Assembly: GCA_028023455.1 (NCBI GenBank)
Contig: JAQFVV010000002.1
Span: 2,852,001 to 2,916,000 of the forward strand
Length of the DNA: 64,000 nt
Source of the DNA: Epiperipatus broadwayi
Taxonomy: Eukaryota; Animalia; Onychophora
Direction: 5' to 3'
The position numbers and the translations under genes are program-made. The first letter of the stretch is position 1. Each line of letters starts with the position of its first letter. The notes under the pieces were generated by a model. The model saw only the letters and a list, made by a program, of their open reading frames with translations. It was not told where the DNA came from and ran no database searches. Shown here piece by piece: positions 19,646 through 60,500 of the stretch.

Positions 19646-19925
19646 TTGTTGTTGTTGTTGTTGTTATTATTATTATTATATTATTATTATTATTATTAGT
19701 AGTAGTAGTAGTAGTAGTATAGTAGTAGTAGTGGTAGTGGTAGTGGTGGTGGGGGTGGTAGTAGTAGTAGTGGTAGTAGTGGTGGTGATGGTGGTGGTAG
19801 TGGTAGTAGTAGTAGTAATATTAGTAGTAGTAGTAGTAGTAGCAGGAGCAGTAGCAACAACAGAAGCAGCAGCAGTAGTTACAATATTATTATTAGTAGT
19901 AGTAGTAGTAATTCATAGTAGTGGT
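19646..19925. repeat. Compound trinucleotide microsatellite (GTT/ATT/AGT/GGT/GCA)
   Basis: Read directly from the sequence. It accounts for the spurious poly-Val ORF. Confidence 0.95.
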
Positions 19926-36900: not shown

Positions 36901-37917
36901 ATACATTTGTGGTATGGCCACATGGTGAGGTAAAATTACAGTCATTCTGGATGCAGATTAACAACATATCTCTTACAATTAAATTCATGATGGAATCAGA
37001 ACAAGAACAAAAATTGGTATTCTTGGATGTTCTTGTGACAAGACTCTCTCAGGGCAAAGTAAAACCAACAGTGTATAGGAAACCAACACACACTGGCAAA
37101 TACTTGGCATATACATCCAGTGATACAAGAAGCACTAAACAAGGAATTGTACTATCACTATGAAACAGGGCAAAGGAGGTTTGTTCAGAAACCAGTGATT
37201 TGGAAAAAGATTCACATAGAACAAATGCTTATGAAGAATGGTTATCTTTCAGCAGTCATCAGAAAAACCTTCAATAGACAACACAAAGAGACACCAAAAA
37301 TAGAAAACAGTTATTGGTATGGTAGTGTATCCTTAAATACCAGGAATGGTGGACAAGTTAAAAAAAAATCTGCAGTCAGTATAACATTAGAACTGCTTTC
37401 CAAAGCCATACCACACTTCAAGGAATGCTTACTTCTACTAAGCCTAAACTGGAAATGCTGAAAAACAAAAACTGCATCTATGAAATACCATGTGAATGTA
37501 GAAGGAAATACACTGGTGAGACCTGTCGCCCTGCTGAACAGCGATTGAAGGAGCACAAACTAATTGTTAAAAGAGAAAAAACAGATGTGTCTACCATAGC
37601 AGATCATGTATGTACTAATGACCATATGCTTAAATGGGAAAATACAAATGTATTGTATAAAGAGGGGCAAATGCATAGAAGAAAATTCAAGAAAGCTGCT
37701 CATATGACAATGGTAAATAATCCTATAAGTAAACCCAGTGCGGCAATACACAATGTATGGAAGCCTCTAATTAATCTTGCTCTTAGGAAAAAATAAAAAA
37801 TAATAATAATTAGACTCGTTAAAATAAAAATAAAAAATAAATAAATTGGAGGACTCAGGAAGATTTGAACCAACCCTCATATATAAATATATCAAATTTC
37901 TACTATATGTTGCCTTT

Positions 37918-40349: not shown

Positions 40350-41835
40350 AGAAAATAATTTTCCAAATTAGAAAATATACCCGTTTGATACATTAGTTAT
40401 TATTATGACAAATTAATTTCATGATCAGAGCAAGAAGCTCATCGTTTAAACTTAGTCTATAATTATTGTTTTTAAAAATAATTAGTCAAGTAGTCTATAA
40501 TTATTGTGTACTAGTTTTATATCAGAACAACTGGCTCTTTATTTAGTGACTTAGCCAGTGATCATTGTGCAGTCCGTATTTTGATTGGCAGTGATCCTTT
40601 ATCATTCTCCATCTGTTGTGATCATTATTCTAATAATAAAACTATTGCAAGAAATTTTAGTTCCTTCATTTTCCATTGTAAAATTGTTATAGTCTTGATA
40701 ATTTTATAAATTTATTATAATAGGGACATAAATTTTACCTTTTTTACAGCTAATGTCATAGTTGAGCTTAAGAAAAATTGTAATTTTATTCACTTACCTA
40801 TAACAATACATTACTAATATGCCTAATTCACCAAAAAGTTTCTCAACTGAGAAGTCTTTGTTACTACAATAATATTTGACAAAAGTTTATGCAGTTAAGA
40901 CAGATAAGAAACTATATTATTGTCAAGCATGTAAATAAAAATAATTGAAACAAATGATATTAAGGAGGCTTTTAAATAACATCTAAAGACAATGACATTG
41001 CTTCTTAAAACATTTTGTTTCTTAGTATTAAATCAGGAACCCTGTATACTATTGGTTAAAAAGTAATTTTATTAACAATAAGTGATGGATTATGCATTAT
41101 GCTATACAAATCAACATGTAATATCACTAAAAAAATAATTCAGAAATATTATAGGGCAAAGAAGATTTGATATATTGACTTAAGATGTCGAAGACCATTT
41201 TATGTAAGTATACGAAAACACCTCAGTTCTTTTTATAGATTTTTGGCTATAAAATTTACAATATAAAATTTTTTTAAGATTTGCAAACTCATATTACTGG
41301 AGAATCAATATTTCATGCATTGACAAAGTCAGCAAATGAAAAAAAAAATCCTAATATTTTGTCAGTTACTAATAATGATACTCCAGCAATGATATGGCAC
41401 TAAAGAGGTTTTCTTGTATTCACTGTAACTGTCTTATTCAGCTACATTATTTAATCACCAAAAATCTGAGTATATTGAAAATGATGCAGAATTTATTCCC
41501 TGGCTGTTTCATGTACCATTTCTTTAACTGTCAAAAGATGACTGTTAGACCACTTTTATAAATTGTTTAACTAAGTGCTAGATTTTCTTACAAAAAAGAT
41601 GATACTTTATAAGCAAACTTGATTTATTTCAAATGTGATATCTTATTTGACATAGTGTTTTAATAAATTTAATGACACAAATCTACAGGATGGAATAGGC
41701 ATTTAATCAAAACAAAGGGAAATTCCATTAGTTTACAAATGTAACAATAGCACCCATTATTGTTACTTGGAGAGTCTCCATTCTGACTTCAATCAATGAT
41801 TTGAAAATATTATTAAAATGAACATACTTGATTGA
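40350..41835 (+). mobile_element. Decayed hAT (Buster/ZBED8/SCAND3-like) transposase, N-terminal part
   Basis: Remnants TIAEILVPS, SVTNNDTPAM, HCNCLIQLHYLITKNLS, KFNDTNL...LIKTK and [12 protein letters not shown] occur in the expected order. Confidence 0.7.
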
Positions 41836-42411
41836 AACAAAGATAATAAAAGGTAATAGAAAATGTAGTGAGAAGAATCGAGTTAATGTTGCATTTCTTA
41901 CTGCAAATCCTCCCCATAGTCAATTAACAGTTATTATTCCAATATATGGAATTGCTGATAAAAGGTTTGTAATTACGGTTGCTCCTCAGAAAGATATTTG
42001 TCCTCATGGTAGGACATAACCAAGGAATGCTGTTGCTATAGTTAATAGTAGAAGAATAATTCCAATATTTCATGTATAAATTAATTTATATGAGTTATAG
42101 TAAATTCCGCGTCCTACATGAATATATAGACAGATGAAGAAAAATGATGCTCCATTTCTGTGAAAAAATCGGATTAATGATCCATTATTCACATCTCTCG
42201 AGATGTAAATAATGGATCTAAATGCTAGGTCTATGTTATCTGAATAATGTATTGCTAATATAATTCCAGTAATAATTTGGAAGAGTAATGAGATGCCAAG
42301 TAATGATCCAAAATTTCATAAATATGAAATATTAGATGGGGTTGGTAAATCAATTAATCTATTATTTATAATTATTAGTAATGGGTGAGTTTTTCGTTCT
42401 GGTTTTATCAT
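41836..42411 (-). pseudogene. cob: Cytochrome b, 5' half only (mt code 5)
   Basis: ATG ATA AAA CCA GAA CGA AAA ACT CAC CCA...WNFGSLLG...WGQMSFWGATVITNL...[16 protein letters not shown], cut at the insertion junction. Confidence 0.95.
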
Positions 42412-42412
42412 A

Positions 42413-43342
42413 TTATCATAGCTGAATAATTTTATAATTTAAAATAATTATTAAAATTCTTAAGCTAATTGGTAAGAAAACTTTTCATGTTAGAAATATT
42501 AGTTTATCATATCGAAAACGTGGGTAAGAACCACGAATTCAAACAAATGCAAATGAAATTAGTGTTGTTTTAATTATTATGAAAAATGGGAAGTTTATAT
42601 TTCTTCCAAAAAAAATTATAGAAGTAATTATTCTTATTAAGAGAATACTTGAATATTCTGCTATGAAAATTATAGCAAATCTTCCTCTTCTGTATTCTGT
42701 GTTAAAGCCTGAAACTAATTCACTTTCTCTTTCTGCAAAGTCAAAAGGAGCTCGATTAGTTTCAGCTAGAATTGAGGAAAATCAGCAAATAAATAATGGT
42801 AATAAGATTATAAAGTTTCAGATTAATAATTGAGAATTATCAATAATTATAAGGTTATATCTTTCTGATAAAAAGATAATTGTTAATAAAATTAGAGCTA
42901 ATCTTACTTCATAAGAAATAGTTTGAGCTACTGCTCGTATTGTTCCAAGTAAGGAAAATTTTGAGTTGGATGATCATCCAGCTATTATTATAAAATAAAC
43001 TGTTATTCTAGTTATACATAAGAAAAATAATAATGCAAAATTAAAATTTATTGGGTTTCATTTTATTGGGATTAATATTCAAATAAATAATGAAATGATG
43101 ATTCTTATTATTGGTGCAATTAAGAAAGTTATTCGATTTCTTAGGTTTAATGATCTATTTTCTTTACAGAAAAGTTTTATTGCATCACTAATTGGTTGAA
43201 GAATTCCGATTAAACTAATTTTATTAGGGCCTTTTCGGATTTGAATATAACCAAGAATTTTTCGTTCAAGTAATGTTAAGAATGCTACTCTGATTAGGAT
43301 GGAAATTAATAGAATTAAATAGAAAATTAAAGATAAAATCAT
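42413..43342 (-). CDS. nad1: NADH dehydrogenase subunit 1 (mt-derived)
   Basis: 930 nt from ATG to TAA. Motifs [29 protein letters not shown] and [10 protein letters not shown]. Confidence 0.95.
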
Positions 43343-43385
43343 ATTTACGAAACTTAAATTCGTTACATTTTTCTGTCATGAAATT
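43333..43385 (-). tRNA. trnL2: mt trnL2 (UAA), T-arm apparently missing
   Basis: Anticodon arm ACGAA-TTTAAGT-TTCGT; D arm ACAG...TGT. Ends are approximate. Confidence 0.75.
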
Positions 43386-43399
43386 TGTTTAGTGTAAAT

Positions 43400-43468
43400 A
43401 AACTGCTTGTTTGCTTATTGATTGATTTACAAAATCAATATAATAATTTATTTAGAACTATTAGTTTA
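43400..43468 (-). tRNA. trnT: mt trnT (UGU)
   Basis: Anticodon arm TTGAT-TTTGTAA-ATCAA on the minus strand. Ends are approximate. Confidence 0.65.
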
Positions 43469-43512
43469 TAATATTGATTTGTGGAATCAAAGATTAATTG
43501 AAGGGTTTAGAT
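43453..43512 (+). tRNA. trnH: mt trnH (GUG)
   Basis: TTGAT-TTGTGGA-ATCAA, directly before nad5. Ends are approximate. Confidence 0.75.
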
Positions 43513-43527
43513 TTAAATTTAGAAAAA

Positions 43528-45187
43528 ATGTTTTGTTTTTTTTTTTTTGAATATTATTTGTTTGTAGAATTTATTTTTGTAATGAAAAATTAGTTTTTAT
43601 TTTTGAAATTGAATTATTAGAAGTTAATTCTAGAAGAATTATTATAACTATAATTTTTGATTGAATATCAGTAATATTTATAACTGTAATTTTTCTTATT
43701 TCTGGGTCTGTTATAAAATTTAGATGTGAATATATAGGAGAAGAAAAAAATAAGATACGTTTTTGTATTATTGTAATTTTATTTGTTATTTCTATAATTT
43801 TTTTGGTGGTTTCACCAAATTTGATTTCTATTTTATTAGGATGGGATGGTTTAGGATTAGTATCTTATGTATTAGTAATTTATTATCAGAATAATAAATC
43901 AAATAGAGCTGGAATATTAACGATTCTAAGAAATCGGATTGGAGATGTTGCTTTCTTAATTTGTATTGCATTTATATTGAATCATGGTAATTGAAATTAT
44001 TTTTCGATGAGTTGGTTAGATATAAATATTATTAATGTTATGATTGTATTAATATTATTAGCTGGAATAACTAAAAGTGCTCAAATTCCTTTTTCGGCAT
44101 TGGTGCCGCCATAGCGGCACCAACTCCTGTATCAGCATTAGTTCATTCATCAACATTGGTTACTGCTGGGGTTTTTTTATTAATTCGTTTTTCTGAATTT
44201 TTCATAGTAGAAATGTCATTTAAAGTTAGTTTATTGTTTATATCAAGGTTAACTATAATAATGGCCAGAATTGTAGCTAATTTTGAATATGATATTAAAA
44301 AAATTATTGCTTTATCAACTCTTAGGCAGCTTGGGCTAATAATAAGTATTGTATCTTTAGGATTTTCTACTTTAGCATTTTTTCATTTGTTGACACATGC
44401 GGTTTTTAAAGCATTATTGTTTATTTGTTCTGGAAGAATTATTCATAATTTTAATCATGTTCAGGATGTTCGAATACTTGGATTTGTAACTAATCAATTA
44501 CCCAAAGTTAGGATTTGTTTGAATACGGCAAATTTGGCTTTATGTGGAATTCCATTTTTAGCTGGATTTTATTCTAAGGATATAATTTTAGAAATATATT
44601 GTTATAGAAATTGGAATTTTATTTCATTTTTAATATTATTTGTTGCTACTTCAATAACAGCATCTTATTCTATTCGAATAGCTTATTTTTCATTTTGAAA
44701 AAAAATTCATTCAAAGAGAATAAATTCGGTTTTTGAAGGAAGAAGAGATATTAGTGATTCTGCAATAATAATAAGTTTGGGGGCTGTTGTTGGTGGGTCA
44801 ATTTTTAGATGAATAATTTTTAGAAGAGTACCTCATATTGAATTAATTTTTTTATTAAAAATTTTAACATTAATAGTTACTTTTATTGGTGGTGGTTATA
44901 TACTTTGTTTTCAAATAGAGTTTTTTTTTAAAAAAAACTCGTTTTTTTTCTCTCAAATATGATTTTTTCCAAAAATTAGGTCTCAGGTGTTTATAAAATT
45001 AATTATAAAATGAAGAAAGTTTTCTTTTGAAAAAATTGATTCTTTATGAATTGAGTCAATAGGACCTCAAAATATATATTTCACTGTGGTGAAAGGTTCA
45101 ATAATATTGCAAATTATTCAGAAGAATTCAGTAAAAACATATTTGTTTAGGATTATCATTTTGGTTTCTTTTATTATATTTTTTTTA
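43528..45187 (+). CDS. nad5: NADH dehydrogenase subunit 5 (mt-derived, frameshifted in this consensus)
   Basis: LGWDGLGLVSY, NRIGD, TKSAQIPF, APTPVSALVHSSTLVTAG, ALSTLSQLG, CGIPFLAGFYSKD. Frameshifts at the poly-T (43537-48) and at 44100-44110. Confidence 0.93.
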
Positions 45188-45245
45188 TATGAATATAGCT
45201 CTTAGCATATTGTTGAAGACAATAAGATGCAACAATAAATTTTTA
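45188..45245 (+). tRNA. trnF: mt trnF (GAA)
   Basis: TATTG-TTGAAGA-CAATA. Confidence 0.8.
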
Positions 45246-45252
45246 GTTAGAA

Positions 45253-45305
45253 ACTAATAATAACTAATTTAAGAATCAATAAATTGTAAATTTATTAAAT
45301 TTTTA
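45253..45305 (+). tRNA. trnY: mt trnY (GUA)
   Basis: ATAAA-TTGTAAA-TTTAT. Confidence 0.6.
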
Positions 45306-46190
45306 TGACTCGCCTTTTTTTTTTGGCGAGTCGATGTAAAAAAGAATTTGTATTGTATGGGTTAACATATAAAATGTAAAATTTTTTTTGAGAATAATTA
45401 AATATTGGTTATTTTTTACTAGAAAAGTTTTTTTAATAGTAAATATTAAATATGGTTATATATTTAAATTATAAAGTTTAATTTGCGTTTAAAAGTTGAA
45501 TGATTATTTGTAAGCAATTTGCTTTTAATTGTTAATTAAAAAGTTAGCCAGATTTGGTGTACATTGATGATGTATATATATATATATATAAAAACTTATT
45601 GATGCAATTAATATATCAAGGGTATAAGTGATTTCGCGCAAATGCGTAAAATATGAATCGTGTCAAAACAAAAAAAAGTATATTAATGAGTAGAAAATAA
45701 TGACAATAAAAATTAATATTTACATGTTCTAGAATTCGTGGACTTAATTTAATGGTATTGCATAGTTGTATAGTAAAATTTTCTTAAGTAGCGGTTAAGA
45801 GATTTATAAAAATAATTAGATTTTAATCTAATATTTTCTAAATAATACAATAAAACTTAATTGAAATTATTTATTTGACATTAATATAAAGTATATACTA
45901 TCACATATATAACATGATTGTTTTATATTTTTATATAATAGAATTAACCATAATATTAATATATATTATTAATAATATATATTAATATTATGGTTAATTC
46001 TATTATATAAAAATATAATTACATCTAATAATAATTATTTAATTATATTCAAATATAAATAATACTAATTATTTTTTTCTAAATTAAATAATATGATATC
46101 TAATACATCGACTCGCCAAAAAAAAGGCGAGTCATAAAATATATTCATTATTATAATTCTTTATGATAAAATTTTTAGAATTATGTATTA
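45301..46190. promoter_or_regulatory. mt control region (may hide further tRNAs), bounded by inverted stem-loops
   Basis: Non-coding, very AT-rich, with TA repeats. A GACTCGCC-(T/A)n-GGCGAGTC hairpin sits at each end. Confidence 0.8.
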
Positions 46191-46195
46191 ATCAT

Positions 46196-46699
46196 TTAAA
46201 TTAGGGTTCGAATCGGGCCGTCCGAAAGACGGCAGATTTTAACTACTCTAATTAAGCAAAGAAGGAGATATAACGCTAGAAAAATTGTAATTTTTCTAAT
46301 GTTTTCGGCAAAAAATCTTGTATAAGAAAAACTTTGATTTAGTTCAATTTGTTCAAAAAGTTGTATTGAGTCTGAATTAAATGAGAATTCATTTAAAATA
46401 ATTAGTATTGGTGAAAAAATGAAAAATCATCTTATTCAGATTAATTTTGTTGGTCAAGACAATCTAAAAAAAAATTTTTCGTTTCTTGCTATACTGGTAG
46501 TATAGAGAAATAGAATTAAAAGTCCTCCTAAGTAAATTAAAATGATTACATAACTATATCAGAAATTTTGTGAGTTTATTCCAATTAAAATAGATAATGG
46601 AATTACGTAGATGATAATTGAGATTCCTATTGAAATAGGATGATTTATTAGGAAAAATCATATTCCAACAGTTAGTGTTAAAAGATAAAGGATTGTCAT
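46196..46699 (-). CDS. nad6: NADH dehydrogenase subunit 6 (mt-derived)
   Basis: 504 nt from ATG to TAA. Motifs NHPISMG, WYSYVIILIYLGGLLILFLYTTSMASNE and GPIR. Confidence 0.92.
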
Positions 46700-46745
46700 A
46701 AGTTAAATTCTAAATTTAAAATCTTATTGTTAGATTAAATTTCCA
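46695..46745 (-). tRNA. trnL1: mt trnL1 (UAG), truncated
   Basis: TTAAA-TTTAGAA-TTTAA; D arm AATCT/AGATT. Confidence 0.7.
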
Positions 46746-47420
46746 TTTAATCTACTTTGTTTCGACTTTTCTTGTTTTTGCAAGAATGACGGGCGATATG
46801 TACATATTAATGTTAATTTTCAATTTATCATGATAATGTGATTTTACTAGCAAATTCTGTTTTTAAAAATTTTTCAATTTTTTATATATAAATATAGATT
46901 AATGTAATTCATTTCATCTTAATAAAATTGCACCTTGACCTGATTTAATAGGTTATTCTATTTTGAGATTAATTTTAAGTAATTTCGTATACGGTGGTAT
47001 ACAAATAAGTATTAAGTAAGGTAAGTCGTGTGTTGTCGATTTAGAAACAAATTCCTTTGAAAAAGTTAGTACCGTCAAATTTATTTTGTTATGTTTCTTT
47101 GAAATATTATTTTATAGTAGAATAGCAGGGTATCTAATCCTGGTTTTGAACTAAATTTAGAATTATTTTAATAATATTATTATTAGAAATTTCATTTTTA
47201 AGAAAAATATGGTTAAATTTATTTATTCAGAAAAAATTAATTTATAATGACGTATAACCGCTGCTGCTGGCACGTATTTGGCCTCTAATAGTTTTTAGAT
47301 TAAAAGTAATTTATTACTTATGGTTTTGTTAATAAAAGGTTGTTTTTAATTAAAATTTTATGAAAAGTTTAAAAAGTTAATTTGTTTACATAAATTAAAT
47401 AAAAGATTTAAGAATTAGTT
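46746..47420 (-). rRNA. rrnS: mt 12S rRNA
   Basis: Reverse complement contains GTGCCAGCAGCAGCGGTTATAC, AGGATTAGATACCCTGCTATT, TACATATCGCCCGTCA and AAGTCGAAACAAAGTAG. The 5' end is approximate. Confidence 0.93.
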
Positions 47421-47429
47421 TTATAAGAA

Positions 47430-48420
47430 TTGTGTATTTTATATATGAGTATATAATAATTATATTGTTTTAAGTGGTTTTATGTAAAAATTGAAAAGGA
47501 ATTATTAAAATTTATAAAGTAATTTATTGTACTTTTTGCATAATGGATGTATGATTAATGGTTAAATTAATATCTCTAAAAAAATTGATCTCTTTTTTTT
47601 GAAAAATTGTTGCATAAATTTTTTTTAAAAGAAATTTAGAAGTGAAATGCTATCGAAATTTTTGATATATAGTTCTTAAAAATTCACTATAGGTGATTTA
47701 ATAAATTTATTAAAAACATTAATGGTTTAGCATTAATGTTTNNNNNNNNNNNNNNNNNNNNNNNNNNNNNNNNNNNNNNNAAGTTTGGTTAATGTACTCT
47801 TTCCCTACAGTTCAGACGTGTGCTCTTCCGAGGAATTCAGCAAAAGTTGTTTCATCAGTTTATCAAAAACATAGCTTTATGAAAATATTTAGGGTATTGT
47901 CTGCTCAATGAGCATTAAATTGCCATGGTATTTATGACTATGCTAAGGTAGCATAATCATTTGTCTTATAAATTAAGACTGGAATGAATGGATAAATGGG
48001 GCAATTCTTTCTTAGGTTAAAAATTAAAAATAATCTTTTTAGTGAAGAGACTAAAATGAGATTGAGGGACGAGAAGACCCTATTAAGCTTAATATAATTA
48101 TTATGTTGGGGAAACAAAAGAGTATATTTTCTTTTGAAATATTTTTTGATAAATGTTGATTTATTATTAATAATAATAGAATAAGTTACTATAGGGATAA
48201 CAGCATAATTTTTTTTAAAAGTTCTTATTTACAAAGAAGATTATGACCTCGATGTTGGATTAGAAATATTATATGGTGAAGTTGTTGTATAAATTAGTCT
48301 GTTCGACTATTAAATTTCTACATGATCTGAGTTCAAATCGGTGTAAACCAGATTGGTTTCTATCTTCAGATATTTTGTGTTAGTACGAAAGGACCACATG
48401 AAGTTTTTTAATGAGTAGAT
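47430..48420 (+). rRNA. rrnL: mt 16S rRNA (contains an N-gap and adapter sequence)
   Basis: AAGGTAGCATAATCATT, GACGAGAAGACCCTA, AGGGATAACAGC, ACCTCGATGTTGGATT, CATGATCTGAGTTCAAATCGG and TAGTACGAAAGGAC. Confidence 0.93.
47796..47831 (+). other. Illumina TruSeq adapter fragments (assembly artefact)
   Basis: ACTCTTTCCCTACA (read-1 primer piece) fused to GTTCAGACGTGTGCTCTTCCGA (read-2 primer piece), next to the N-gap at 47742-47780. Confidence 0.97.
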
Positions 48421-48482
48421 TGAACTCTTATAGGTGAATATATAGACTTTGGAAGTCTAAGATGAATGATTTTTCAATTAAA
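48418..48482 (+). tRNA. trnP: mt trnP (UGG)
   Basis: TAGAC-TTTGGAA-GTCTA. Confidence 0.8.
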
Positions 48483-48483
48483 A

Positions 48484-48762
48484 ATTTTAATTCCAATTAT
48501 ATTTGTTATTTTTGGTGTTATTACATTTATTATGTATCGGTTACATTTATTATCAATGTTATTAAGATTGGAGTTTATTATATTGAATATTTTTTGAGTC
48601 ATGATGTCATGACTAGTTTTTTTAGGTAAAGAATTATTTTTAAGTTTAGTTTTTTTAACTTTAACTGCTTGTGAGGCTAGTTTAGGTTTATCATTAATGG
48701 TTAGGTTAATTCGTAGTCATGGAAATGATTTATTTAATAGTTTAAGAATTGTTAGATGATAG
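48484..48762 (+). CDS. nad4L: NADH dehydrogenase subunit 4L (mt-derived)
   Basis: HLLSMLLSLEF, ACEASLGLSLMVSLIRSHGND. 7-bp ATGATAG overlap with nad4. Confidence 0.92.
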
Positions 48763-50109
48763 AAATTTTGATAATATTTATTATGTTAGTTGTTATGTGA
48801 GTATTTAAGTTAATACGTTGAGGATTTATGTTAAATGTGATATTAATTATTATAGAGATCGGAAGAGCACACGTTAAATATTTACATGTTTGTATCAAGA
48901 ATTTCTGGCGTATTTGGTGTTGATATGGTTTCTATACCGTTATCAATATTAAGAATATTGACTTGTGTATTAATGATGTTTGCTAGGATAAAAGTTTTGT
49001 TGAAAGATGATTATAAGGATTTTTTTTGTTTATTAATTTTAATCTTGAATGCTGTTTTGTTTTATACTTTTGTTGCTTTAAATATTTTAGTGTTTTATGT
49101 TTTGTTTGAGTTTACTTTAATTCCTACAATTCTTTTGATTATAGGTTGAGGTTATCAGCCTGAACGTTTACAGGCCATGTTATACTTATTGTTTTACACT
49201 TTATTTGCTTCTTTTCCATTATTAATAGGAGTAATTGGAATGTATTGGTGAATAGGAAGAATGTCTATTATTATGTTGATGAAAAGTTATTTTTATATGA
49301 GGGAATTTATGATACTATATTGAGTTATTTGTATGTCAGCTTTTTTGGTTAAATTACCAATTTATGTTGTTCATATTTGGCTTCCTAAGGCTCATGTAGA
49401 AGCACCAATTTCTGGTTCAATAATTTTGGCTAGAGTTTTGTTGAAATTAGGAGGTTATGGTGTTATTCGTTTTTCAATGATTTTTAAAATAATTACAGTT
49501 AAATTTAGTGAGTTTTTTATTTGTTTAAGGTTGTTTGGAGGAATTATAACTAGAATGATTTGTATTCGACAGGTTGATTTAAAAGCATTAATTGCTTATT
49601 CTTCTGTTGGGCATATGGGGTTAATGATTAGATCAGTTTTTGTTATATGTAAATGAAGAGTTAATGCAGCTATTTGAGTCATGGTGGGACATGGTTTTTG
49701 TTCTTCCGGTTTGTTTTGTTTATCAAGAATTTCTTATGAGCGATATCATTCTCGTAGGATGATGGTTTCTAAAGGAATGATTAGGTTATTTCCTAGGTTA
49801 AGGTTGTTTTGATTTTTGTTTGTTATTGCTAATATTGCAGCTCCACCTTCTTTGAATTTGTTAGGAGAAATTGGTGTTATTAATTCTTTGGTTTTTTGAA
49901 ATAACATTAGAATTGGTTTGTTAGTTTTTATTTCGTTTTTTGGTGCTGTATATAGAATGTATTTGTACTCATATACTCAGCATGGTCAGATATTTTTTAA
50001 TTTAAATAGTATGAAATCAATTAGATGTGTTGAGTATCTTTTGTTATTTTTACATTTGTTACCATTGAATTTGTTGTTGTTGAAATCTGAGTTTTTAATA
50101 GTTTATTAG
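48756..50109 (+). CDS. nad4: NADH dehydrogenase subunit 4 (mt-derived, frameshifted by an adapter)
   Basis: [62 protein letters not shown]. Confidence 0.95.
48856..48874 (+). other. Illumina adapter AGATCGGAAGAGCACACGT inside nad4 (artefact)
   Basis: Exact match to the TruSeq read-through adapter. Confidence 0.98.
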
Positions 50110-50152
50110 AATTTTTAATTGGAAATTAAATGTAATATATACTTATATGTCT
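50095..50152 (-). tRNA. trnG: mt trnG (UCC)
   Basis: rc TTTAA-TTTCCAA-TTAAA with D arm AGTA..TAC. Confidence 0.75.
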
Positions 50153-50205
50153 TTTGGATTAATTAAAGCTTTGAAGGCTTTTAGTTTTGTTAACTTATTT
50201 GGTTA
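50150..50205 (-). tRNA. trnW: mt trnW (UCA)
   Basis: rc AAGTTAACAAAACT-AAAAGC-CTTCAAA-GCTTT, a canonical trnW. Confidence 0.8.
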
Positions 50206-50248
50206 TTTTTGAATTATGAATTCAAAAGCTTTTTTAGCTTATTGTGAA
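50195..50248 (-). tRNA. trnM: mt trnM (CAU)
   Basis: rc AAGCT-AAAA-AAGC D arm, then TTGAA-TTCATAA-TTCAA. Confidence 0.75.
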
Positions 50249-50297
50249 CTATAATTTAAACTTCAAAAGTTTAAGTGTCAAACACTTATGAATTTTC
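50245..50297 (-). tRNA. trnQ: mt trnQ (UUG)
   Basis: rc AGTG-TTTGA-CAC D arm, then TAAAC-TTTTGAA-GTTTA. Confidence 0.7.
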
Positions 50298-51288
50298 CAT
50301 ATTTTTTTTTGTTTTATTTTTTGTTAGTATTTAGTTTAATAATTCAGATAAGAATAAGTTCATGAGTTTTTATTTGAGTTGGTTTAGAGATGAATATATT
50401 GTGTATTATTCCTATTTTAGTTAGTGGAATTAAAAATATGAATGAGAGGGCAGTTAAGTATTTTATTATTCAAGTATTTGGTTCAATTATTTTATTAATT
50501 GGGTTTTTTTTAAGGACTATGTTGTTAATAAGTTATTATTATTATGATGTGATTGGATATGTTTTTTGAATATCTATAATATTAAAAGTAGGTGCTGCAC
50601 CTTTTCATTTTTGGTATCCTGGTGTTTTGGAAAATTTAAGATGAATAAATATTTTTTTGATAATAACAGTCCAAACTTTTGGACTGTTATTTATTATAAG
50701 GTATTTATTAAGGTTTAGTATTTATTTAATATTTAGGGTAATATTAAGAGTGGTTATTGGAGGAGTTGGAGGATTTAATCAAGTAATAATACGTAGTTTG
50801 TTTGCATATTCGTCTATTGGTCATGTTGGTTGGATAATTGTCTCTATTATGTTAAGAGATTCTGTTTGGGTTATTTATTATTTGTTTTATTTTATAATAA
50901 TAATATTATTTAGAATTTTATTTTATTTTAATGGGATTGTTTATATTAATCAAATATTTATTTACTTTTCTAAGTTTGAGAAGTGGGTTATTTTGTTAAG
51001 AATACTTTCTTTAGGTGGTTTTCCACCTCTTAGTGGGTTTTTTCCTAAGATTATAGTGTTAAATATTTTGATATTAAAGGGTGAGAAGATTTTGGTGTTA
51101 ATAATGTTAATGGGGATATTGATTGGATTATATTATTATATTCGTTTGATATATGTTAGAATAATGTTTGAGACATTAAGGTCATTATGTTATTTTAAAG
51201 TAAAAAAAAATTTGATATTAGATTGGTGATTACATATTTTGATAATGGTAATATTGTTTATTATTCCTGTTGGAATAATTTGATTTTA
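50288..51288 (+). CDS. nad2: NADH dehydrogenase subunit 2 (mt-derived)
   Basis: WVGLEMN, KYFIIQ, KVGAAPFHFWYP, SLFAYSSIGHVGW, LSLGGFPPLSGFFPK. Incomplete TA stop. Confidence 0.93.
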
Positions 51289-52818
<1,530 letters not shown>

Positions 52819-52819
52819 T

Positions 52820-53497
52820 ATGGCAAGATGAAATGAGTTGATATTTCAGGATGCGTCTTCTCCTTTAATGGAGCAGTTGATTTTTTTTCATGATCATTCT
52901 TTATTTGTTTTAATTTTGATTACAATTTTAATTGGGTATAGAATATTAAGTTTAATTTTAAATAAAAATTTAATGCGATATTTGTTGGAAGGTCAATGGA
53001 TTGAAATGGTTTGAACAGTTTTACCTGTATTTATTTTAGTATTTATTGCTTTTCCATCATTACATTTATTGTATATGTTGGATGAGGTTTCTGATCCATT
53101 TTTAAGAATTAAAGTTGTAGGGCATCAATGATACTGAAGGTATGAATATAGAGATTTTATTGATGTTGAGTTTGATTCATATATAATTAGTATAGATGAT
53201 TTAGAGTTAGGTGATTTTCGGCTCCTTGATGTTGATAATCGGTTGATTTTACCATTTTGTGGTCAAATTCGTTTTTTAATTAGGGCTGCTGATGTATTAC
53301 ATTCTTGAACTGTCCCATCATTAGGAGTTAAGGTTGATGCGGTTCCTGGACGTTTAAATCAGATTGTGTTATATTTAAATCGAGTTGGATTATTTTATGG
53401 ACAATGTTCTGAAATTTGTGGTGCTAATCATAGTTTTATACCTATTGTTATTGAATCAATTCCAATAAATTTTTTTGTTAAATGGATTATAAGGTAA
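52820..53497 (+). CDS. cox2: Cytochrome c oxidase subunit 2 (mt-derived)
   Basis: 678 nt from ATG to TAA. Motifs [24 protein letters not shown] and [15 protein letters not shown]. Confidence 0.97.
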
Positions 53498-53545
53498 AAG
53501 GTATAATTTATAAAAATATAAATATGTCAAATTTAAAATGAATTC
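53496..53545 (+). tRNA. trnD: mt trnD (GUC), truncated
   Basis: TAAAT-ATGTCAA-ATTTA. No trnK precedes it. Confidence 0.7.
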
Positions 53546-53700
53546 CTCAGATGTATCCGTTAAGTTGAATGTTAATAATACCATTAAGACTTTTTGTTAT
53601 GTTAATTTATTTAATTTTAGTTTATTATTTGATTAAATATTTAAAGTATCAGGTCAAATTTTTTAGTCAGAAAAAAATTATTTGTTTTTGGGAATGATAA
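53542..53700 (+). CDS. atp8: ATP synthase F0 subunit 8 (mt-derived)
   Basis: ATT CCT CAG ATG (MPQM). 7-bp ATGATAA overlap with atp6. Confidence 0.92.
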
Positions 53701-54369
53701 TAGGGTTATTTAATGTTTTTGATCCTTCTTCAAGAGTTTATATATTAAGATTAAATTGGATTTCTTTAGTGATTGGAATTTTTTTTATTCCTTTATGGTT
53801 TTGATTAATTCCTACTCGTTTAGTAGGGATTATAAATTTTGTGTTAAATTTTTTAAATAATGAATTTAAAATTCTTTTGATAATAAGGAATATTAAAGGA
53901 ATAACATTAATTTTTATTAGTTTGTTTTTTATGATTATATTGAATAATAGATTAGGTTTGATACCTTATGTGTTTACAAGAACAGCACATTTGTTAGTTA
54001 CTTTAAGATTAGCTTTTCCTTTATGAATTAGTTTTTTGATTTATGGGTGAGTAAATAAAATAATAATAATGTTTGCTCATTTAGTTCCTTTAGGAACTCC
54101 TTCAGTATTAATATCATTTATGGTTTGTATTGAGACAATTAGAAATTTTATTCGTCCCTTAACTTTATCTGTTCGATTAGCGGCAAATATAATTGCTGGG
54201 CAGTTGTTATTAAGGTTAGTTGGAGGTCAAGGAAGAATTTTAGGTACAATAATATTATTTGTTTTATTGTTTGGTCAAACATTATTAATAATACTTGAAA
54301 GGGCTGTTTCTGTTATTCAATCATATGTTTTTGTTGTTTTAAGAAGTTTATATTCAAGTGAGGTATATT
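53694..54369 (+). CDS. atp6: ATP synthase F0 subunit 6 (mt-derived)
   Basis: [33 protein letters not shown]. Incomplete T stop. Confidence 0.95.
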
Positions 54370-55155
54370 ATGATAATACATAATCATCCATATCATATGG
54401 TTGAGTTGAGTCCATGACCAATTATTGGGGCGTGTGGGGCGTTATTATTAACAGCTGGATTAGTAAATTGATTTCATAATTATATAATAGGGTTATTATT
54501 AATAGGAATATTTATTATTCTTTTAACAATAATTCAATGATGACGTGATGTCATTCGTGAAGGAACATATCGGAACTTCATACTACTAATGTAGTATTTG
54601 GTCTTCGATGGGGTATGGTTTTATTTATTTTATCAGAGATTTTATTTTTTTTCAGATTTTTTTGGGCATTTTTTCATAGAAGTCTTGCTCCTACAATAGA
54701 TTTAGGTTCATATTGACCACCATCAGGTGTAATAGTTTTGAATCCATTTCAAGTTCCTTTGTTAAATACTGCTGTATTATTGGCTTCTGGTGTTACTGTA
54801 ACTTGAGCTCATCATAGTTTGATGGAAAGAAATTATATTCAGGGGGTTCAGGGATTATTTTTTACTGTTTTATTAGGATTGTATTTTACTTTATTACAAG
54901 GGATGGAATATTATGAATCAAGATTTTCTATTTCTGACTCAGTTTATGGAACAACGTTTTTTGTTGCTACTGGATTTCATGGATTACATGTAATTATTGG
55001 TAGTAGATTTTTATTAATTTGTTTGATACGGCAATTTAATTATCAGTTTTTCAGAATTGTGATCTTTTGGATTTGAGGCTTCTGCCTGATATTGACATTT
55101 TGTTGATGTTGTTTGGTTGTTTTTGTTTATTTCAATTTATTGATGAGGGTCATAA
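54370..55155 (+). CDS. cox3: Cytochrome c oxidase subunit 3 (mt-derived; two compensating frameshifts)
   Basis: [60 protein letters not shown]. Confidence 0.95.
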
Positions 55156-55512
55156 ATTATAATGTTAGTGTTAGTGATTATATTTTTTGTTGTATTTTTA
55201 ATTGTTTTAGTATTGATAATATTTATGTATTTATTTTCTGAGAAAAGGTATAAAGATCGTGAAAAAAATTCTCCTTTTGAATGTGGATTTGATCCTTTTA
55301 GATCCAGGCGATTACCTTTTTCTTTACGATTTTTTTTAATTGGAATTATTTTTTTGATTTTTGATATTGAAATTGTTTTAATTTTACCTTATCCTAATAG
55401 GATAAGTTAATTCAGGTTAGAAGAATATATTTGGTTGGACAATTATTTTTGTTTATTTTACTCCTTGGTTTAATTCATGAATGAAATCAAGGAGCTCTTG
55501 ATTGAGCAATTT
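55156..55512 (+). CDS. nad3: NADH dehydrogenase subunit 3 (mt-derived; one frameshift)
   Basis: [40 protein letters not shown]. Confidence 0.93.
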
Positions 55513-55562
55513 ATTTACCAAAACAAATGTGTTTAGTTTCGACCTTAAGTGTAACTTGAACT
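55510..55562 (+). tRNA. trnR: mt trnR (UCG)
   Basis: TTTAG-TTTCGAC-CTTAA. Confidence 0.6.
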
Positions 55563-55610
55563 TATATATTTTGTTTTCAAAACAAATTCTTTCGTAAGAT
55601 TAAGAAAAAT
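55550..55610 (-). tRNA. trnS2: mt trnS2 (UGA)
   Basis: rc TCTT-ACGA-AAGA D arm, then TTTGT-TTTGAAA-ACAAA. Its strand and position fit the ancestral cob-S2 adjacency across the circle. Confidence 0.7.
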
Positions 55611-55900
55611 GTAATGAAATATGATACTGATAATACACCAAAGTATCTCCAAAATAACTGAAAGAAAAAAACAACAAACAAGGAATTGAAATTTAAATTC
55701 AAAAATAGCTTCCAATAGTTCTGGTTGCAAAAACAGATTAGTAAACTTTGACCTGAAAGTTTTAATTTCATTTTCTTCACCATATGTGTTTAGAAATCTG
55801 TTAATTAAAAAAGAAACTAATTGCAAATAACCAATTGCAATGATTTAAGAACCAACTATCAATAAATTGATAACAGCACTCCTGCTTCTTCCTTTTCATT
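55611..55900 (+). mobile_element. C-terminal part of the hAT transposase begun at 40350
   Basis: VMKYDTDNTPKYLQ...TTNKELKFKFKNSFQ*FWLQKQISKL*P...KRN*LQIT matches the ZBED8/SCAND3-type C-terminus (ELK.KFK.GYQ.FWLQ). Confidence 0.7.
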
Positions 55901-56779
55901 AAGATTATATTTATTATTATTTGTGTTTTTTTATTTTAGTATTACTCTTCATTATCTTAATTACTATTGTTGATTTTTTTTTTAAAAATTATATTGTCTG
56001 ACTTCAAGATATCTTATTTTTCTCAACATTTCAATTTATTATATTATGAGTTTAAGTAAAATTATAGATACATATAACAGTACTGGTTTAATACACGTTC
56101 TCCACAATTTTGGTTACTAATGGGAGACCCAAACTTCCCACTGACACATCCAAGCAATAAATGAGATCGAACAAACCACAAGGAATTGTGATAGATAGTG
56201 TTCCAAATCTTTTGACCATTTTTTAAAAATTAACACACAAATTTTGTACAACTATTCCTGATCAAATCACATGACTAAACATACAAATTAAAAAATAGAA
56301 AAATAAAATTGCCAAAAAAAACATTTAACCAATCAAAAGATTGTCCATAAAATGAGCAAAAGCTAAAATAAAATTGCATACAATCAAATAAAAAATATAT
56401 GTAACCACTGCCAAAAGAGCATTTGTGTACTGAAAAATAAAATTAAAAAATAAAATTGCTCAAACTAAATGTTTAGTTAGTAAATACTAATGCATATGAT
56501 CAAACAAAAAATGTGTGTACGTGTTAGTCTCTAAAGAAATTTTATTACATGGGCCACACCAATGGTTACAATAGTAAAGCCAAATGAAAATTTGTGATTA
56601 TGTAGCAATTACAGAATTATATTGAACAAATATGTAAATAAAGGTTTATACCCAGTTCCACATAAAGTAGTAGAATTTTACAGAAATATAGACAAATATA
56701 GACATAAAGACTCCATTTCATCAAATATCAGTAAATAAAAAACAGTTCAAATGTACTACTTTTTGAAAACTGTGCAAAT

Positions 56780-57560
56780 GTAATAAATTGTTTTATGATA
56801 TTTCATTAGTGCCAAGCATTTTCCAGGTGAATATGGGAGTGCTTTTTAGAGCATTGAATGGTATAATTCTCAACCTAGATTACATTTTGATTATTACAAC
56901 AATGGAAGCAGAATTGGAAAAGTGAATAGATGTAGTCTGCTCAGAGAAATTGAAGACTAAATTAAATACAAATAAATGTGTTTGGTCCATAAAAAAATAA
57001 AATTTCTTAGATATTTAATAAATTCAAATGACCAATACCCAAACCCCGACAAGGTAAAGACATTTAAAAATGCTGAGAAGTCTAAAAATATAAAAAAAAT
57101 GGTGGTTAAACAATTGGAAATGTGGGAAAAGTCTATGACTTCTTGAACTCATATGCAGATTATACTGGACTATTAAATGGAAACAATATTGATGGTAATA
57201 GACATATATTAATGGTGTAATGAATATAAAATGATAAAAGTATGAGTACAAAATGTACAATAACAGAACTGAATAAAATATTTGCTTCTCATAGTTATCT
57301 GGAGCTAATACTGACAGATAGCAACATAAGTTTTGTGCCACAAAGTTTAAGAATAACTTGCAGTATAAAGGATTAAACATATACTTAATCCAACACTTAA
57401 AAAATGTGTTGAAAAAAATAAAAATAAGAATGTACTGGGAGATTTAATGGATATATTTAAACAAAATTTTACTCCTAGTACTGCCACAAACAAGATTCAA
57501 GCAGAGGTAATTGTGTCTCTTTTTCCACACTTATTTAAGTAAACTATTACCAAACACTAT
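56780..57560 (+). mobile_element. Decayed Gypsy integrase remnant
   Basis: HFPG zinc-finger remnant and TITELNKIFASHSYLELILTDSNISF...GLNI (cf. IF...G.P..IVSDNG.QF). Confidence 0.55.
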
Positions 57561-60500
57561 TTTAAAAAATCAAAATCAAAATTGGGAAAAAATTTCAAAT
57601 AGAAAAAATGTATGAATACATGATCTATTAAAATGTAAACAGATTCCTGGCATAAAAAGAAAGAATTATCAAATCAAAATGGGAGGGAAATGAGGAGACA
57701 CATTAATTATCTTTTCCATCATTATGAAGATACTTTACTGGACATTGTTAGAAATAAAGAAGGTAGCAGTGAAAAAAGATATTTTATTAAATGATCCAGA
57801 TACCTATCTAGATAAAAAAAATAATTGAAGAAAGCATAATGAGGAGATAATTCAGGAAGAACAACAATATTTGCCTACTCCAATAGGTGAAGTGAGAGAG
57901 TTATTCCTGCAGGTATGACAAAGTCAGATTTTAAATATTATGTTTGCTAGTAAATCTATTATTTCTAGAATAGGAGGAGTGAAACATCTTAGCTATAAAT
58001 AAATAGCATTTATTTTGTATATATGTACAGATTATTTTCACTTATAAATATTTTCTCTAATTACTCTTGAAAATCAAAAAAGAAATTGCTACAAGTAGGA
58101 AAGTTAAAATAAACAAAATTTGTATGTAAATCAGAACATTGGTAATAATTGAACAAAGATGTGGAGAAATAACTTCTATGCAGTGACAAGATTGAGAGTG
58201 CTTGAATCATCATAAATGATAATATGGAAGAAGAAGCATTTGTAGTTTGAATAAAAGGTTTTCCAAAGAAAGTATAAATAAATAAAAATTTACCAAATTG
58301 CACATGAGGAATTTAACAACAGTTGCGATGGTGAAGATAAAGTTTAAATTGATTGCACTAAGACGGTGTTTAAATGAGGATCTGTAGGTGATTATTTTAA
58401 TATGGAAATAGTTATTATTTATTAAAGACTTTTAACTTCTAAAGCTAGTTATATATTAAAATATTATAAGTGCTAAAGATAACTTAAAATCTCATATGCA
58501 AATTTGATTTACTCCTGGAAAAAAGATATTATTTCTATTCAAAGTTAAATTGTACTTGTTTAATGTGGATTTTTATTCTTATAGGCTTATGTCATTGTTA
58601 TTCTTATTAATAAATATTGTTATATATATTCTATGCCTAATTTATGCTGTTTTTTTTTTATTATTATCTGACTGGTCTTAAAGAACCTGAAGACATAGCA
58701 GTAACCAGCCAATGTTAGTAAGTGAATATTTTGCTACTCTTAAATGAGGGCTTCAAATGATTTAAAAATTGCCTGGAAATAAAACAATACTGGGAAATAA
58801 TGCATTTTTCTTCTTTGCTTTTAAGAAATCTGTAAAAGAAACTCTTGCTTTGAGGTGGGATGTTTAAAGACCTTTATCATTCTGTTTTAGTTACTACTTA
58901 CTTACCTACATTTGTTTATAAAACAATATTAAATCTTTATGTACTATCTATAATATTACTAATCATTACCTCTTGATGACGTGTTCAGAATTCAACCTCT
59001 ATAGGTTTTTTTCAAAGTGACTAACGATCTACCAACACAATAATACTTTTTTTAAAATATCACCACTATACTGTATTTGATGTCAAAGCTTAAATGTTTA
59101 AATTATGTTTATATATGATTAAGCCTTATTTGTAGTATCTTAAGATGTACATAGAAAATAAAACTCTATAAAATTCATTTTTTCACAAAGAATTTTGATA
59201 CAAATGAATATAAACTATCACTCTTGTCATTCACTTGACTGTTGAAGTAGTATTAAATCTTTACGTATTTTCTAAACTTTTAAACATTACCTATTGATAA
59301 AAATGCCATCCCATTACAATGGTATATAAAGGTTTAATATAACTTTACTTAATTACATATTTATAATATTGATTTTCTTTTCACATTAAGATATTTATAA
59401 AAAAAATGAATTTTTTGATTTGCTTTGTAGATTAATCAATCTGTTAAAAGTAGGGCTGATTAAATATACTCTTTTTTAATGTTTATGTTTTGACATCAAA
59501 TAGAACATGGTGATAATATTTAAATAAGAATAACACTGTTATGTCAATAGACTGTCATTTACTTCTAAAAGTCCTAAACACAGGCACGTGGAGATTTTCT
59601 GATTTTTTAATCAATAGATAACATTTTGAAGTTTAATAAGAAAAACTGTACAACACAAATACATGCGTGTATATGTGTGGTGAAGCCTTTCTGATTATGA
59701 TTAGTTTTAATGACTTAATATTAAAATTATAAAAGATAAATAAATCTATTATAAATAGTTTTGTGATAAGTACTTTTCTTAAATAAAAGATGAAATTAAT
59801 ATTTAGACCAAAAAAAAAGTTACCCCCCACCCCACCCCAAAATAAAAATTATTAGAATGAAGATAACCTTTGAATAATTTTTCAAAATAATTTCAATAAA
59901 ATGAATAAAATAAATATTTCCAAAATTATAAAAAAATATAAACTTGTAGATAAACTTTTGCTAGTTTTCTAGAATCTAGACAATCCTTATAGTCACTTTA
60001 AAAAGCAAAATTAATTGCTTACTGAAGCGGTCATATATATACATCATATATATATATATGCTTCATGTATATATTTTGTTATTAAGTTGAAATATTAAGA
60101 CATTTTTAAAAAATTTAATGTATCAAAAATGTAATTTTATTATTAAATTCGTATGTAATAACTGAAATACAGGCTGCTCATCCCCTACATATGTATTAAA
60201 TGGATTGTGTCCTGTACATGAGGGGTCAGATTGACTTTAGGTCAATGTGGGTGTGACAAGAATCTCGGCCTCAGGGTGGCCTTTGAGCGTTCCATCATCA
60301 GATTTTCAATTGGATGGATGATTGAAGAGTTGGAGGATGGAGAAGATTGAAACCTGTCCATTAAAGTATGAAGATTGTCTATCATTATATATATATATAT
60401 GAGCACTTATTGCATATATGTGTAGAGATGATAATATGGACCAACTGATGATTTCTGGTTTAGCATAAAATACTGATATTGGTGATTATTTATCTTTTCG

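Follow-up and report, generated by a model that had tools for sequence, protein, structure and literature searches.

The mitochondrial block of ~13.8 kb (about 41,836-55,603) written into the nuclear contig of Epiperipatus broadwayi analysed here (the window, 64,000 nt in length) is best explained as a mosaic made by the assembly and soldered over an older NUMT piece, not as the true sequence of a recent insertion, and we give this reading a probability of roughly 0.55. Because the block carries adapter scars and its right join is missing from short-read contigs, the apparent "fresh insertion" was probably put together by the assembly on top of an older piece of mitochondrial DNA. The locus most likely carries some older mitochondrial-derived DNA, and mitochondrial-type reads would have bridged, filled or over-corrected whatever separates the nuclear flanks, which would leave a mosaic of present-day mtDNA, other mitochondrial-like patches, untrimmed Illumina adapter and small fold-back joins. 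Which software step made this mosaic, and what truly stands between the flanks, we infer.

The block originates from the mitochondrial genome of the species itself. Invertebrate-code ORFs in it cover 13 of 13 mitochondrial protein genes, both rRNAs and tRNAs are present, and its likeness to mtDNA contigs from this organism is 97-99%; within the block GC skew ranges from +0.13 to +0.50, as against about 0 in the left flank. The first-pass annotation, which described an almost whole mitochondrial genome as a circle opened in cob, was right in this (13 protein genes and 2 rRNAs), and its figure of ~550 bp of cob lost also stands: cob (41,836-42,411, minus strand, 0 stops in table-5 translation) retains only its first 192 codons, so that the loss on the 3' side comes to about 555 nt. 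The last 60 residues of the truncated product match Pfam PF00033 (E 7e-20). Beyond it lie nad1 (42,416-43,321, minus strand), a table-5 ORF with 0 stops and typical ND1 motifs by eye, and nad5 (43,520-45,202, plus strand), whose frame is broken at a GC-rich palindrome (44,100-44,123; arm of 10 nt, 7 of them G/C) and switches between KSAQIPFS and AAMAAPTPVSALVHSS. The nad5 ORF at 44,156-44,695 matches ND5 (PF00361), and a protein search with it for the true mtDNA of the species reached a best identity of 63%, none being higher. The non-coding stretch at 45,203-46,198 may be the natural control region; it holds a perfect palindrome of 96 nt (45,923-46,018) as well as a GC-stem hairpin in two inverted copies (45,301-45,338 and 46,104-46,139). 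It is followed by nad6 (46,199-46,702, minus strand), a table-5 ORF of 168 codons with 0 stops that was assigned by eye, and by rrnS (46,770-47,450, approximate ends, minus strand), in which three conserved 12S sites were found at 46,782, 47,122 and 47,255 with 1-3 mismatches. The landmarks of rrnL (47,460-48,400, approximate ends, plus strand) are a 23S-like motif at 47,528, a 16Sar-like site at 47,853 and a 16Sbr site at 48,320, and the gene is interrupted by a run of 39 N (47,742-47,780) and by adapter. The same gene, strand and order continue on both sides of the N run, and no reading frame is at issue across it since rrnL codes for RNA.

The remaining genes of the block, except the last tRNA, lie on the plus strand. 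nad4L (48,481-48,759) is a table-5 ORF with 0 stops, and nad4 (48,756-50,106) is broken at an exact 19-nt adapter piece (48,856-48,874). nad2 (50,294-51,255) contains an in-frame palindrome of 30 nt (50,662-50,691). cox1 (51,262-52,815) has two frame breaks, one at about 51,600, where an extra GA creates AGATCT, and one at 52,574-52,598, where adapter stands in for about 30 native letters and after the first letter of which (52,574) the true mtDNA contigs diverge from the window. cox2, trnD, atp8 and atp6 (52,820-54,380) are all intact. Two local scrambles were found in cox3 (54,367-55,155), at 54,571-54,574 and 55,046-55,064; in run X6, compared with the window, one more A follows 54,571, one more C follows 55,050 and 2 letters are lacking at 55,063, and correcting the window with the letters of this run gives the usual COX3 C-terminus. 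The frame of nad3 (55,156-55,530) is broken at a palindrome (55,388-55,406), and runs X6 and X5 as well as minor contigs of X1 and X3 carry an extra G after 55,404. The last mitochondrial letters belong to trnS2 (UCN; 55,537-55,603, minus strand), called by ARAGORN in mitochondrial mode, which also makes many false calls within genes; its bacterial mode found no tRNA, and nothing in the block matched Rfam. The block has at least seven frame breaks, and each was seen directly to fall on adapter sequence, on a short palindrome or at a locally scrambled site, while about 11 kb of coding sequence contains 0 in-frame stops in table-5 translation; taken together, the block bears no sign of nuclear decay. 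Over the region compared with contigs, its frame breaks are absent from the true mtDNA.

Exact pieces of Illumina TruSeq adapter are directly visible at three sites of the block (47,796-47,831, 48,856-48,874 and 52,574-52,598; chance expectation 0), and none was found in the nuclear flanks within the window. The scar at 47,796-47,831, for which chance expectation is 0.00-0.02, is a piece of the TruSeq universal adapter fused to a piece of the index adapter, 15 nt past the N run. In the bin 52,500-52,699, which holds the cox1 adapter, word depth rises to 1.1 million, about 10 times that of mtDNA; this bin is deep in runs of other organisms too, very deep in that of an unrelated one, and contigs leave 52,598 toward many different places. 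GATCT alone was considered as an adapter mark and rejected, as it is equally common in the flanks; two 2-nt insertions that make GATCT are possibly adapter tails. Adaptor contamination of assemblies is the target of NCBI's adaptor screen, and library-adapter sequence inside an assembled stretch, here exact TruSeq pieces of 14-23 nt, is what was found. One piece lies beside the N run, which could itself mark an adapter that was masked or a join that failed. Unlike usual adaptor contamination, the pieces are confined to the ultra-deep mitochondrial part, and in two genes they take the place of native letters instead of lying at scaffold ends.

The right junction was compared with Logan contigs of the likely source sample (X1, X3), which are contigs and not raw reads, and the comparison covered this side only. 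Word depth of the true mtDNA is at least 25,000, at least about 700 times that of nuclear DNA. The mtDNA contigs of X1, X3 and X6 fit the window up to 55,603 and then differ, the true mtDNA running on from trnS2 into the cob tail. This continuation bears out the cob-S2 adjacency, which the first-pass annotation had seen fitted by trnS2 at the far end of the insert. Its limits for the insert hold as to a block of ~13.8 kb, while the mitochondrial right end that it placed at 55,610 is moved by the contigs to 55,603. From the other side, two flank contigs (X1 record 5, depth 33.7; X3 record 13, depth 43.2) match 55,599-56,180 with 0 mismatches over 582 nt, and the nuclear right flank (55,604-58,280) as a whole is covered by contigs at word depth 21-43 with 0-3 differences; no mitochondrial similarity was found in it. 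The end of the mtDNA and the contig of the nuclear flank have the five letters ATTAA (55,599-55,603) in common. To the left of 55,599 the flank contigs extend into 30 letters that are absent from the whole 64-kb window, so the right flank joins other letters in these contigs than in the assembly. The junction 55,603/55,604 is bridged by none of the Logan contigs listed, in which no physical join of the block to nuclear DNA was found on this side; such contigs can drop rare paths and show presence, not absence, and where a low-depth junction meets a node of depth 25,000, pruning may remove it. At this junction, where the contigs join the flank elsewhere, the claim that the NUMT is genuine, very recent and inserted with almost no loss of target DNA is accordingly left unsupported.

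The 30 letters are cob-like themselves. Compared with the reverse complement of the true mtDNA continuation, i.e., the cob tail, 22 of 30 positions match, a level reached by 0 of 127,942 window positions, and by their letters they resemble a diverged cob 3' end in opposite orientation. This unmatched likeness indicates that the flank really borders on a mitochondrial piece that is old and diverged, which is what would be expected if likeness drew mitochondrial reads into the locus. Elsewhere in the window flanks, old NUMT remains were searched for with phmmer (all block proteins against six-frame flank translations), which found nothing, and with tblastx and relaxed blastn, which returned AT-rich noise only.

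The first-pass annotation took the target of the insertion to be a ZBED8/SCAND3-type hAT transposase gene that stays in frame from one flank to the other, and this target is very hard to credit. It was based on FW...LQ-type residues seen by eye in one right-flank frame. The codon read as W at 41,833-41,835, at the junction, is TGA, which the nuclear code reads as a stop, and the read-through works only if it is taken as W; over the next 105 codons, 7 stops interrupt the frame of the right flank. Pfam gave no hit at E up to 10 for the flank pieces or the joined peptide; tblastn of 41 GTF2IRD2-type hAT proteins against the joined flanks found nothing while detecting a control remnant at 30.0-31.0 kb, and the hAT ORF of the window did not match the flanks either. 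Neither a C-terminal dimerisation domain nor a frame continuous over the joined flanks was found. A true hAT remnant is present in the window at 30,055-30,786 on the minus strand, with the C-terminal dimerisation domain of Pfam PF05699, and such likeness is lacking in the flanks of the block. The contig letters preceding the right flank are, moreover, cob-like and not hAT-like. On the left, the junction zone is 41,806-41,838 and its exact point is uncertain: cob homology is clear to 41,836, and the Pfam Cytochrome_B alignment reaches beyond this limit, to about 41,806, so that the left-flank peptide of the first-pass annotation may be the reverse strand of cob-derived letters. No second copy of the flank element from which an empty site could be read was found in the 64-kb window, and an exact look-up of a right-flank ORF found no record.

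The block differs from deep mtDNA by 13 or more letters private to the window; these fall into clusters, with 5 of them within 31 nt and 5 within 150 nt. Codon position 3 holds 11 of 13 of them (binomial p about 2e-4, calculated by hand), and because of this a "ghost" mitochondrial copy made of sequencing errors only was rejected. Some of the private letters occur in X1 and X3 at depths of 25-250 and others have depth 0; the full allele set of the cluster at 52,357-52,387 is carried by no X1 or X3 contig. Such clustered codon-3 differences fit patches from another mitochondrial-like copy. The codon-3 bias also shows a distinct mitochondrial-like molecule of low depth, and a true NUMT would look alike, which speaks against a mosaic.

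A genuine, recent and near-complete NUMT, end-joined at short shared letters and heterozygous or polymorphic in a pooled sample, is the main alternative; we regard it as possible, and clearly less probable than the mosaic. The adapters, palindromes and N run would then be only local damage from polishing or gap closing under extreme mtDNA depth. The private differences, mostly at codon position 3, and the depths of 25-250 at which some occur in X1 and X3 favour it. Shared stretches of 5 nt such as ATTAA are typical of end-joining, and the one at the right junction counts for a genuine NUMT and against a mosaic. N is absent from both junctions, as the first-pass annotation had noted, which again agrees with a genuine NUMT and speaks against a mosaic. 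On the other hand, the right flank is joined at full depth to other letters; an empty allele would require that the insertion allele lost at least 30 nt, as against "almost no target deletion"; the old cob-like piece ends exactly at the junction, an unlikely coincidence for a random break; and, scars aside, there is no trace of time spent in the nucleus. Full-length NUMTs are reported in arthropods (PMC8138834) and offer a parallel for a genuine insertion. The block is like the large NUMTs reported in springtails (PMC8138834) and in the harvester Leiobunum (PMC13196914) in being near-complete, collinear, N-free at its edges and placed on a chromosome-scale scaffold, and unlike them in carrying adapters, in having frame breaks that are scars and not decay, and in that the right junction tested here is not in the short-read contigs of the sample.

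Two further readings appear improbable. A pure mis-join would set a free mitochondrial contig, or a low-frequency haplotype at nuclear-like depth, between nuclear contigs at a locus without mitochondrial DNA. The inner N run and the pieces that end in adapter do resemble contig ends, and at the mtDNA depth seen here a variant of 0.1% would be as deep as nuclear DNA; yet both flanks are joined without N, and the letters at the right flank are significantly cob-like, so that some mitochondrial-derived DNA stands at the locus. It is similarly doubtful that a young near-complete NUMT landed at the edge of an older cob-derived one, partly replacing it, and is still polymorphic. 

The assembly-made mosaic has a precedent in springtail assemblies, where reads of mitochondrial origin alone had "soldered" two partial NUMTs and the authors split the contig (PMC8138834). 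The present locus resembles that case in having real mitochondrial-like DNA at the flank and an interior from the far commoner mtDNA reads; it differs in that the proof there came from spanning long reads, whereas here short-read contigs at one junction were examined, and in that the old flank piece (cob tail, plus sense) is absent from the window.

For curators, three adapter sites and one doubtful join are to be mended. Taken as written, the block would pass for a very recent, near-undecayed NUMT of 13.8 kb within a transposase gene and so enter into estimates of how old and how large NUMTs are in the species and by what mechanism they insert; given its adapter scars and unsupported junction, its sequence and place are unfit for such estimates without read-level proof. 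If the insertion is real, it would be one more large NUMT, a known kind of feature, and if a young copy did land at the edge of an older one, old NUMT sites would be "renewable" by new mtDNA via short homology.

The mitochondrial block of the window, at ~41,836-55,603, has a plus-strand GC skew of +0.13 to +0.50 versus ~0 in the nuclear left flank, and all 13 mitochondrial protein genes are found in it with long open frames under the invertebrate mitochondrial code. It starts at ~41,836 with the first 192 codons only of cob (minus strand), followed by open frames of nad1 (minus) and nad5 (plus), a 1-kb non-coding stretch at 45,203-46,198 between the 3' ends of nad5 and nad6, the open frame of nad6 (minus), rrnS (minus) and rrnL (plus), then nad4L, nad4, nad2, cox1, cox2, atp8, atp6, cox3 and nad3, all on the plus strand, and trnS2 (minus) as the last gene. 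The nad5 ORF matched ND5 proteins (PF00361) with a top identity of 63%, so a close relative is absent from the searched protein collection. The rRNA genes were located via sites conserved in 12S and 16S, each with 1-4 mismatches; an Rfam search for them gave no match. The gene content bears out the first-pass annotation of an almost complete mitochondrial circle opened in cob, which is short by ~555 nt. Within the non-coding stretch, a perfect palindrome spans 96 nt (45,923-46,018) and a GC-stem hairpin occurs as two inverted copies (45,301-45,338 and 46,104-46,139); to judge from the sequence, the stretch may serve naturally in control or termination, or may be one more fold-back artefact. 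The rRNA genes (46,770-48,400) lie back to back with their 5' ends ~10-20 nt apart, which is an unusual layout.

Exact 19-nt copies of the adapter start were found at 48,856-48,874 (plus strand, in nad4) and 52,580-52,598 (minus strand, in cox1), and a third copy with 3 mismatches at 47,816-47,834; the chance expectation was 0.00, and no adapter piece longer than 10 nt occurs across the 50 kb of nuclear sequence in the window. Every frame break in the block falls on such a scar, i.e., an adapter piece, a short palindrome or a local scramble: a GC-rich palindrome in nad5 (44,100-44,123), the adapter at 48,856-48,874 in nad4, an extra GA at ~51,600 and the adapter at 52,580-52,598 in cox1, where ~30 native letters are replaced, local scrambles in cox3 (54,571-54,574 and 55,046-55,064) and a palindrome in nad3 (55,388-55,406). 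No in-frame stop lies away from the scars in any block gene, and nothing in the block is a sign of time spent in the nucleus; its apparent decay is assembly damage. The 39 N at 47,742-47,780 fall within rrnL (plus strand), an RNA gene for which reading frame is no issue. The two sides agree in gene, strand and order, with a 23S-like motif starting at 47,528 on the left and a 16Sar-like site (47,853) and a 16Sbr site (48,320) on the right, at a spacing close to what we take to be that of insect rrnL. Illumina TruSeq adapter begins 15 letters past the N run and occupies 36 letters, with pieces of the universal and index adapters joined together; the run therefore marks either masked adapter or a point where two short-read extensions failed to meet.

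Logan contigs, assembled sequences in which rare paths of the raw reads can drop out, were compared over 52,300-58,299, and so at the right junction, for runs X1 and X3 (one sample, organism A), X6 (a second sample of organism A) and X5 (organism B). The X1/X3 sample is probably the source of the assembly because, over lengths of 270-1,580 nt, its flank contigs show just 0-3 differences from the window. In this interval the depth comparison proposed in the first-pass annotation gave a word depth of ~25,000 for mtDNA contigs in each of X1 and X3 versus 21-43 for flank contigs, a ratio of at least 700. The adapter bin reached 1.1 million and was very deep in X5 and X6 too; from 52,598 contigs jump to many unrelated places, and past 52,574 the true mtDNA continues with 30 letters unlike the window. 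Relative to the window, two clean X6 contigs (4,181 and 1,791 nt) carry an additional A after 54,571, C after 55,050 and G after 55,404, and are 2 letters shorter at 55,063. These letters keep nad3 in frame and give COX3 its customary C-terminal FGFEASAWYWHFVDVVW...WWGS motif; at the points where the window's genes break, the true mtDNA is undamaged.

The mtDNA contigs of X1, X3 and X6 follow the window up to 55,603, which moves the mitochondrial end from the 55,610 first proposed, and then pass from the end of trnS2 into sequence that reads, on the reverse strand, as the C-terminal end of cob (...FFIKKLLNYY followed by a stop), confirming the proposed cob-trnS2 adjacency. The 592-nt flank contigs, at depths of 33.7 (X1) and 43.2 (X3), match 55,599-56,180 with 0 differences, and left of 55,599 they carry further letters that are not block sequence, with a 30-letter consensus ending ...GTTATTGAATATGGA that is absent from the entire 64-kb window. 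ATTAA (55,599-55,603) is the sole sequence common to the mtDNA end and the flank. Reads spanning the junction had been the check proposed for an insertion; among the matches listed, no Logan contig, a form in which rare paths can be lost, bridges 55,603/55,604, and the flank contigs go into the other letters instead. These agree at 22/30 positions with the reverse-complemented continuation of the true mtDNA, a score reached at none of 127,942 window positions on both strands, and translate as FFGKKLLNM... versus FFIKKLLNYY-stop in mtDNA. The match indicates that an old, diverged cob-tail piece, in plus sense and thus opposite to cob in the block, precedes the right flank in the sample's real DNA, exactly where the assembly places the block. 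No mitochondrial likeness was found in the window's own flanks. A tRNA-Lys-like fold called by ARAGORN in mitochondrial mode at 55,732-55,803 (plus) in the right flank is probably a spurious prediction in AT-rich sequence.

The reading of the flanks as one hAT transposase continuing through the insertion is very improbable. The 'W' said to close the left flank is a TGA codon, and 7 of 105 codons in the right-flank frame are stops. A Pfam search at E up to 10 with the right piece, eight flank pieces free of stops and the joined peptide, its stops written as X, gave no match. The same search detected a hAT dimerisation domain in the ORF at 30,058-30,786 (E 5.5e-05). Neither this ORF nor 41 GTF2IRD2-type hAT proteins, collected with it as query and detecting 30.0-31.0 kb, matched the joined flanks. 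The left-flank peptide may partly be the other strand of cob-derived letters, since the Pfam cytochrome b alignment extends ~12 residues beyond 41,836. The true hAT transposase C-terminal remnant (~30,055-30,786, minus; 243-aa ORF, PF05699, E 5.5e-05) shares up to 60% identity with GTF2IRD2-like proteins, many from spiders, and also from mantis shrimp, beetle, fish and bat, which hints at a widely spread element. Three overlapping ORFs at 36,483-37,796 (plus), 4 kb left of the block, are probably a decayed retroelement, the first having a weak RVT_1 match (E 9e-06, under Pfam's cut-off), and a low-complexity ORF at 19,635-19,997 (plus), with runs of C, Y, I, S and V codons, is simple-repeat DNA and not a gene.

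At 13 listed sites X1, X3, X5 and X6 all agree against the window. With 11 of the 13 falling at codon position 3 and conservative amino-acid changes, these private letters are not random errors; the pattern indicates another mitochondrial-like source whose divergence was under selection, either a rare haplotype or a NUMT that preserves a different one. The letters occur in clusters, with 5 in 31 nt (52,357-52,387), a combination found in full in no X1 or X3 contig, and 5 in 150 nt (52,906-53,056), and almost none follow for 1.1 kb. Private letters would likewise be expected from a real, recently inserted NUMT in a heterozygous or polymorphic state that had deleted at least 30 nt of its target and was heavily damaged locally in assembly, but the new insertion would have to coincide by chance with the exact edge of an old NUMT, and we regard this explanation as possible but rather unlikely. 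We favour, at a probability of about 0.55, an assembly-made mosaic over a locus that truly holds some older mitochondrial-derived DNA; such a locus would draw mitochondrial reads with no coincidence needed. Partial NUMTs 'soldered' by purely mitochondrial reads are a documented case (PMC8138834), the same kind of process as that proposed here. A pure mis-join, at a locus without mitochondrial DNA such as the cob-tail piece, is improbable, though less so than the hAT reading.

Between X6 and the window ~2% of mtDNA sites differ over 52,300-55,603 (65 in 3.3 kb, mostly transitions), and some X6 letters are present as minor variants in X1 and X3; this variation suggests sizeable mitochondrial diversity or pooled individuals. 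Short X1/X3 contigs over 53,067-54,429 are ~90-95% like cox2 and atp6 of the block at depth 34-210, which means that other, older copies of mitochondrial type, whether NUMTs or rare haplotypes, are present in this sample alongside the deep mtDNA.
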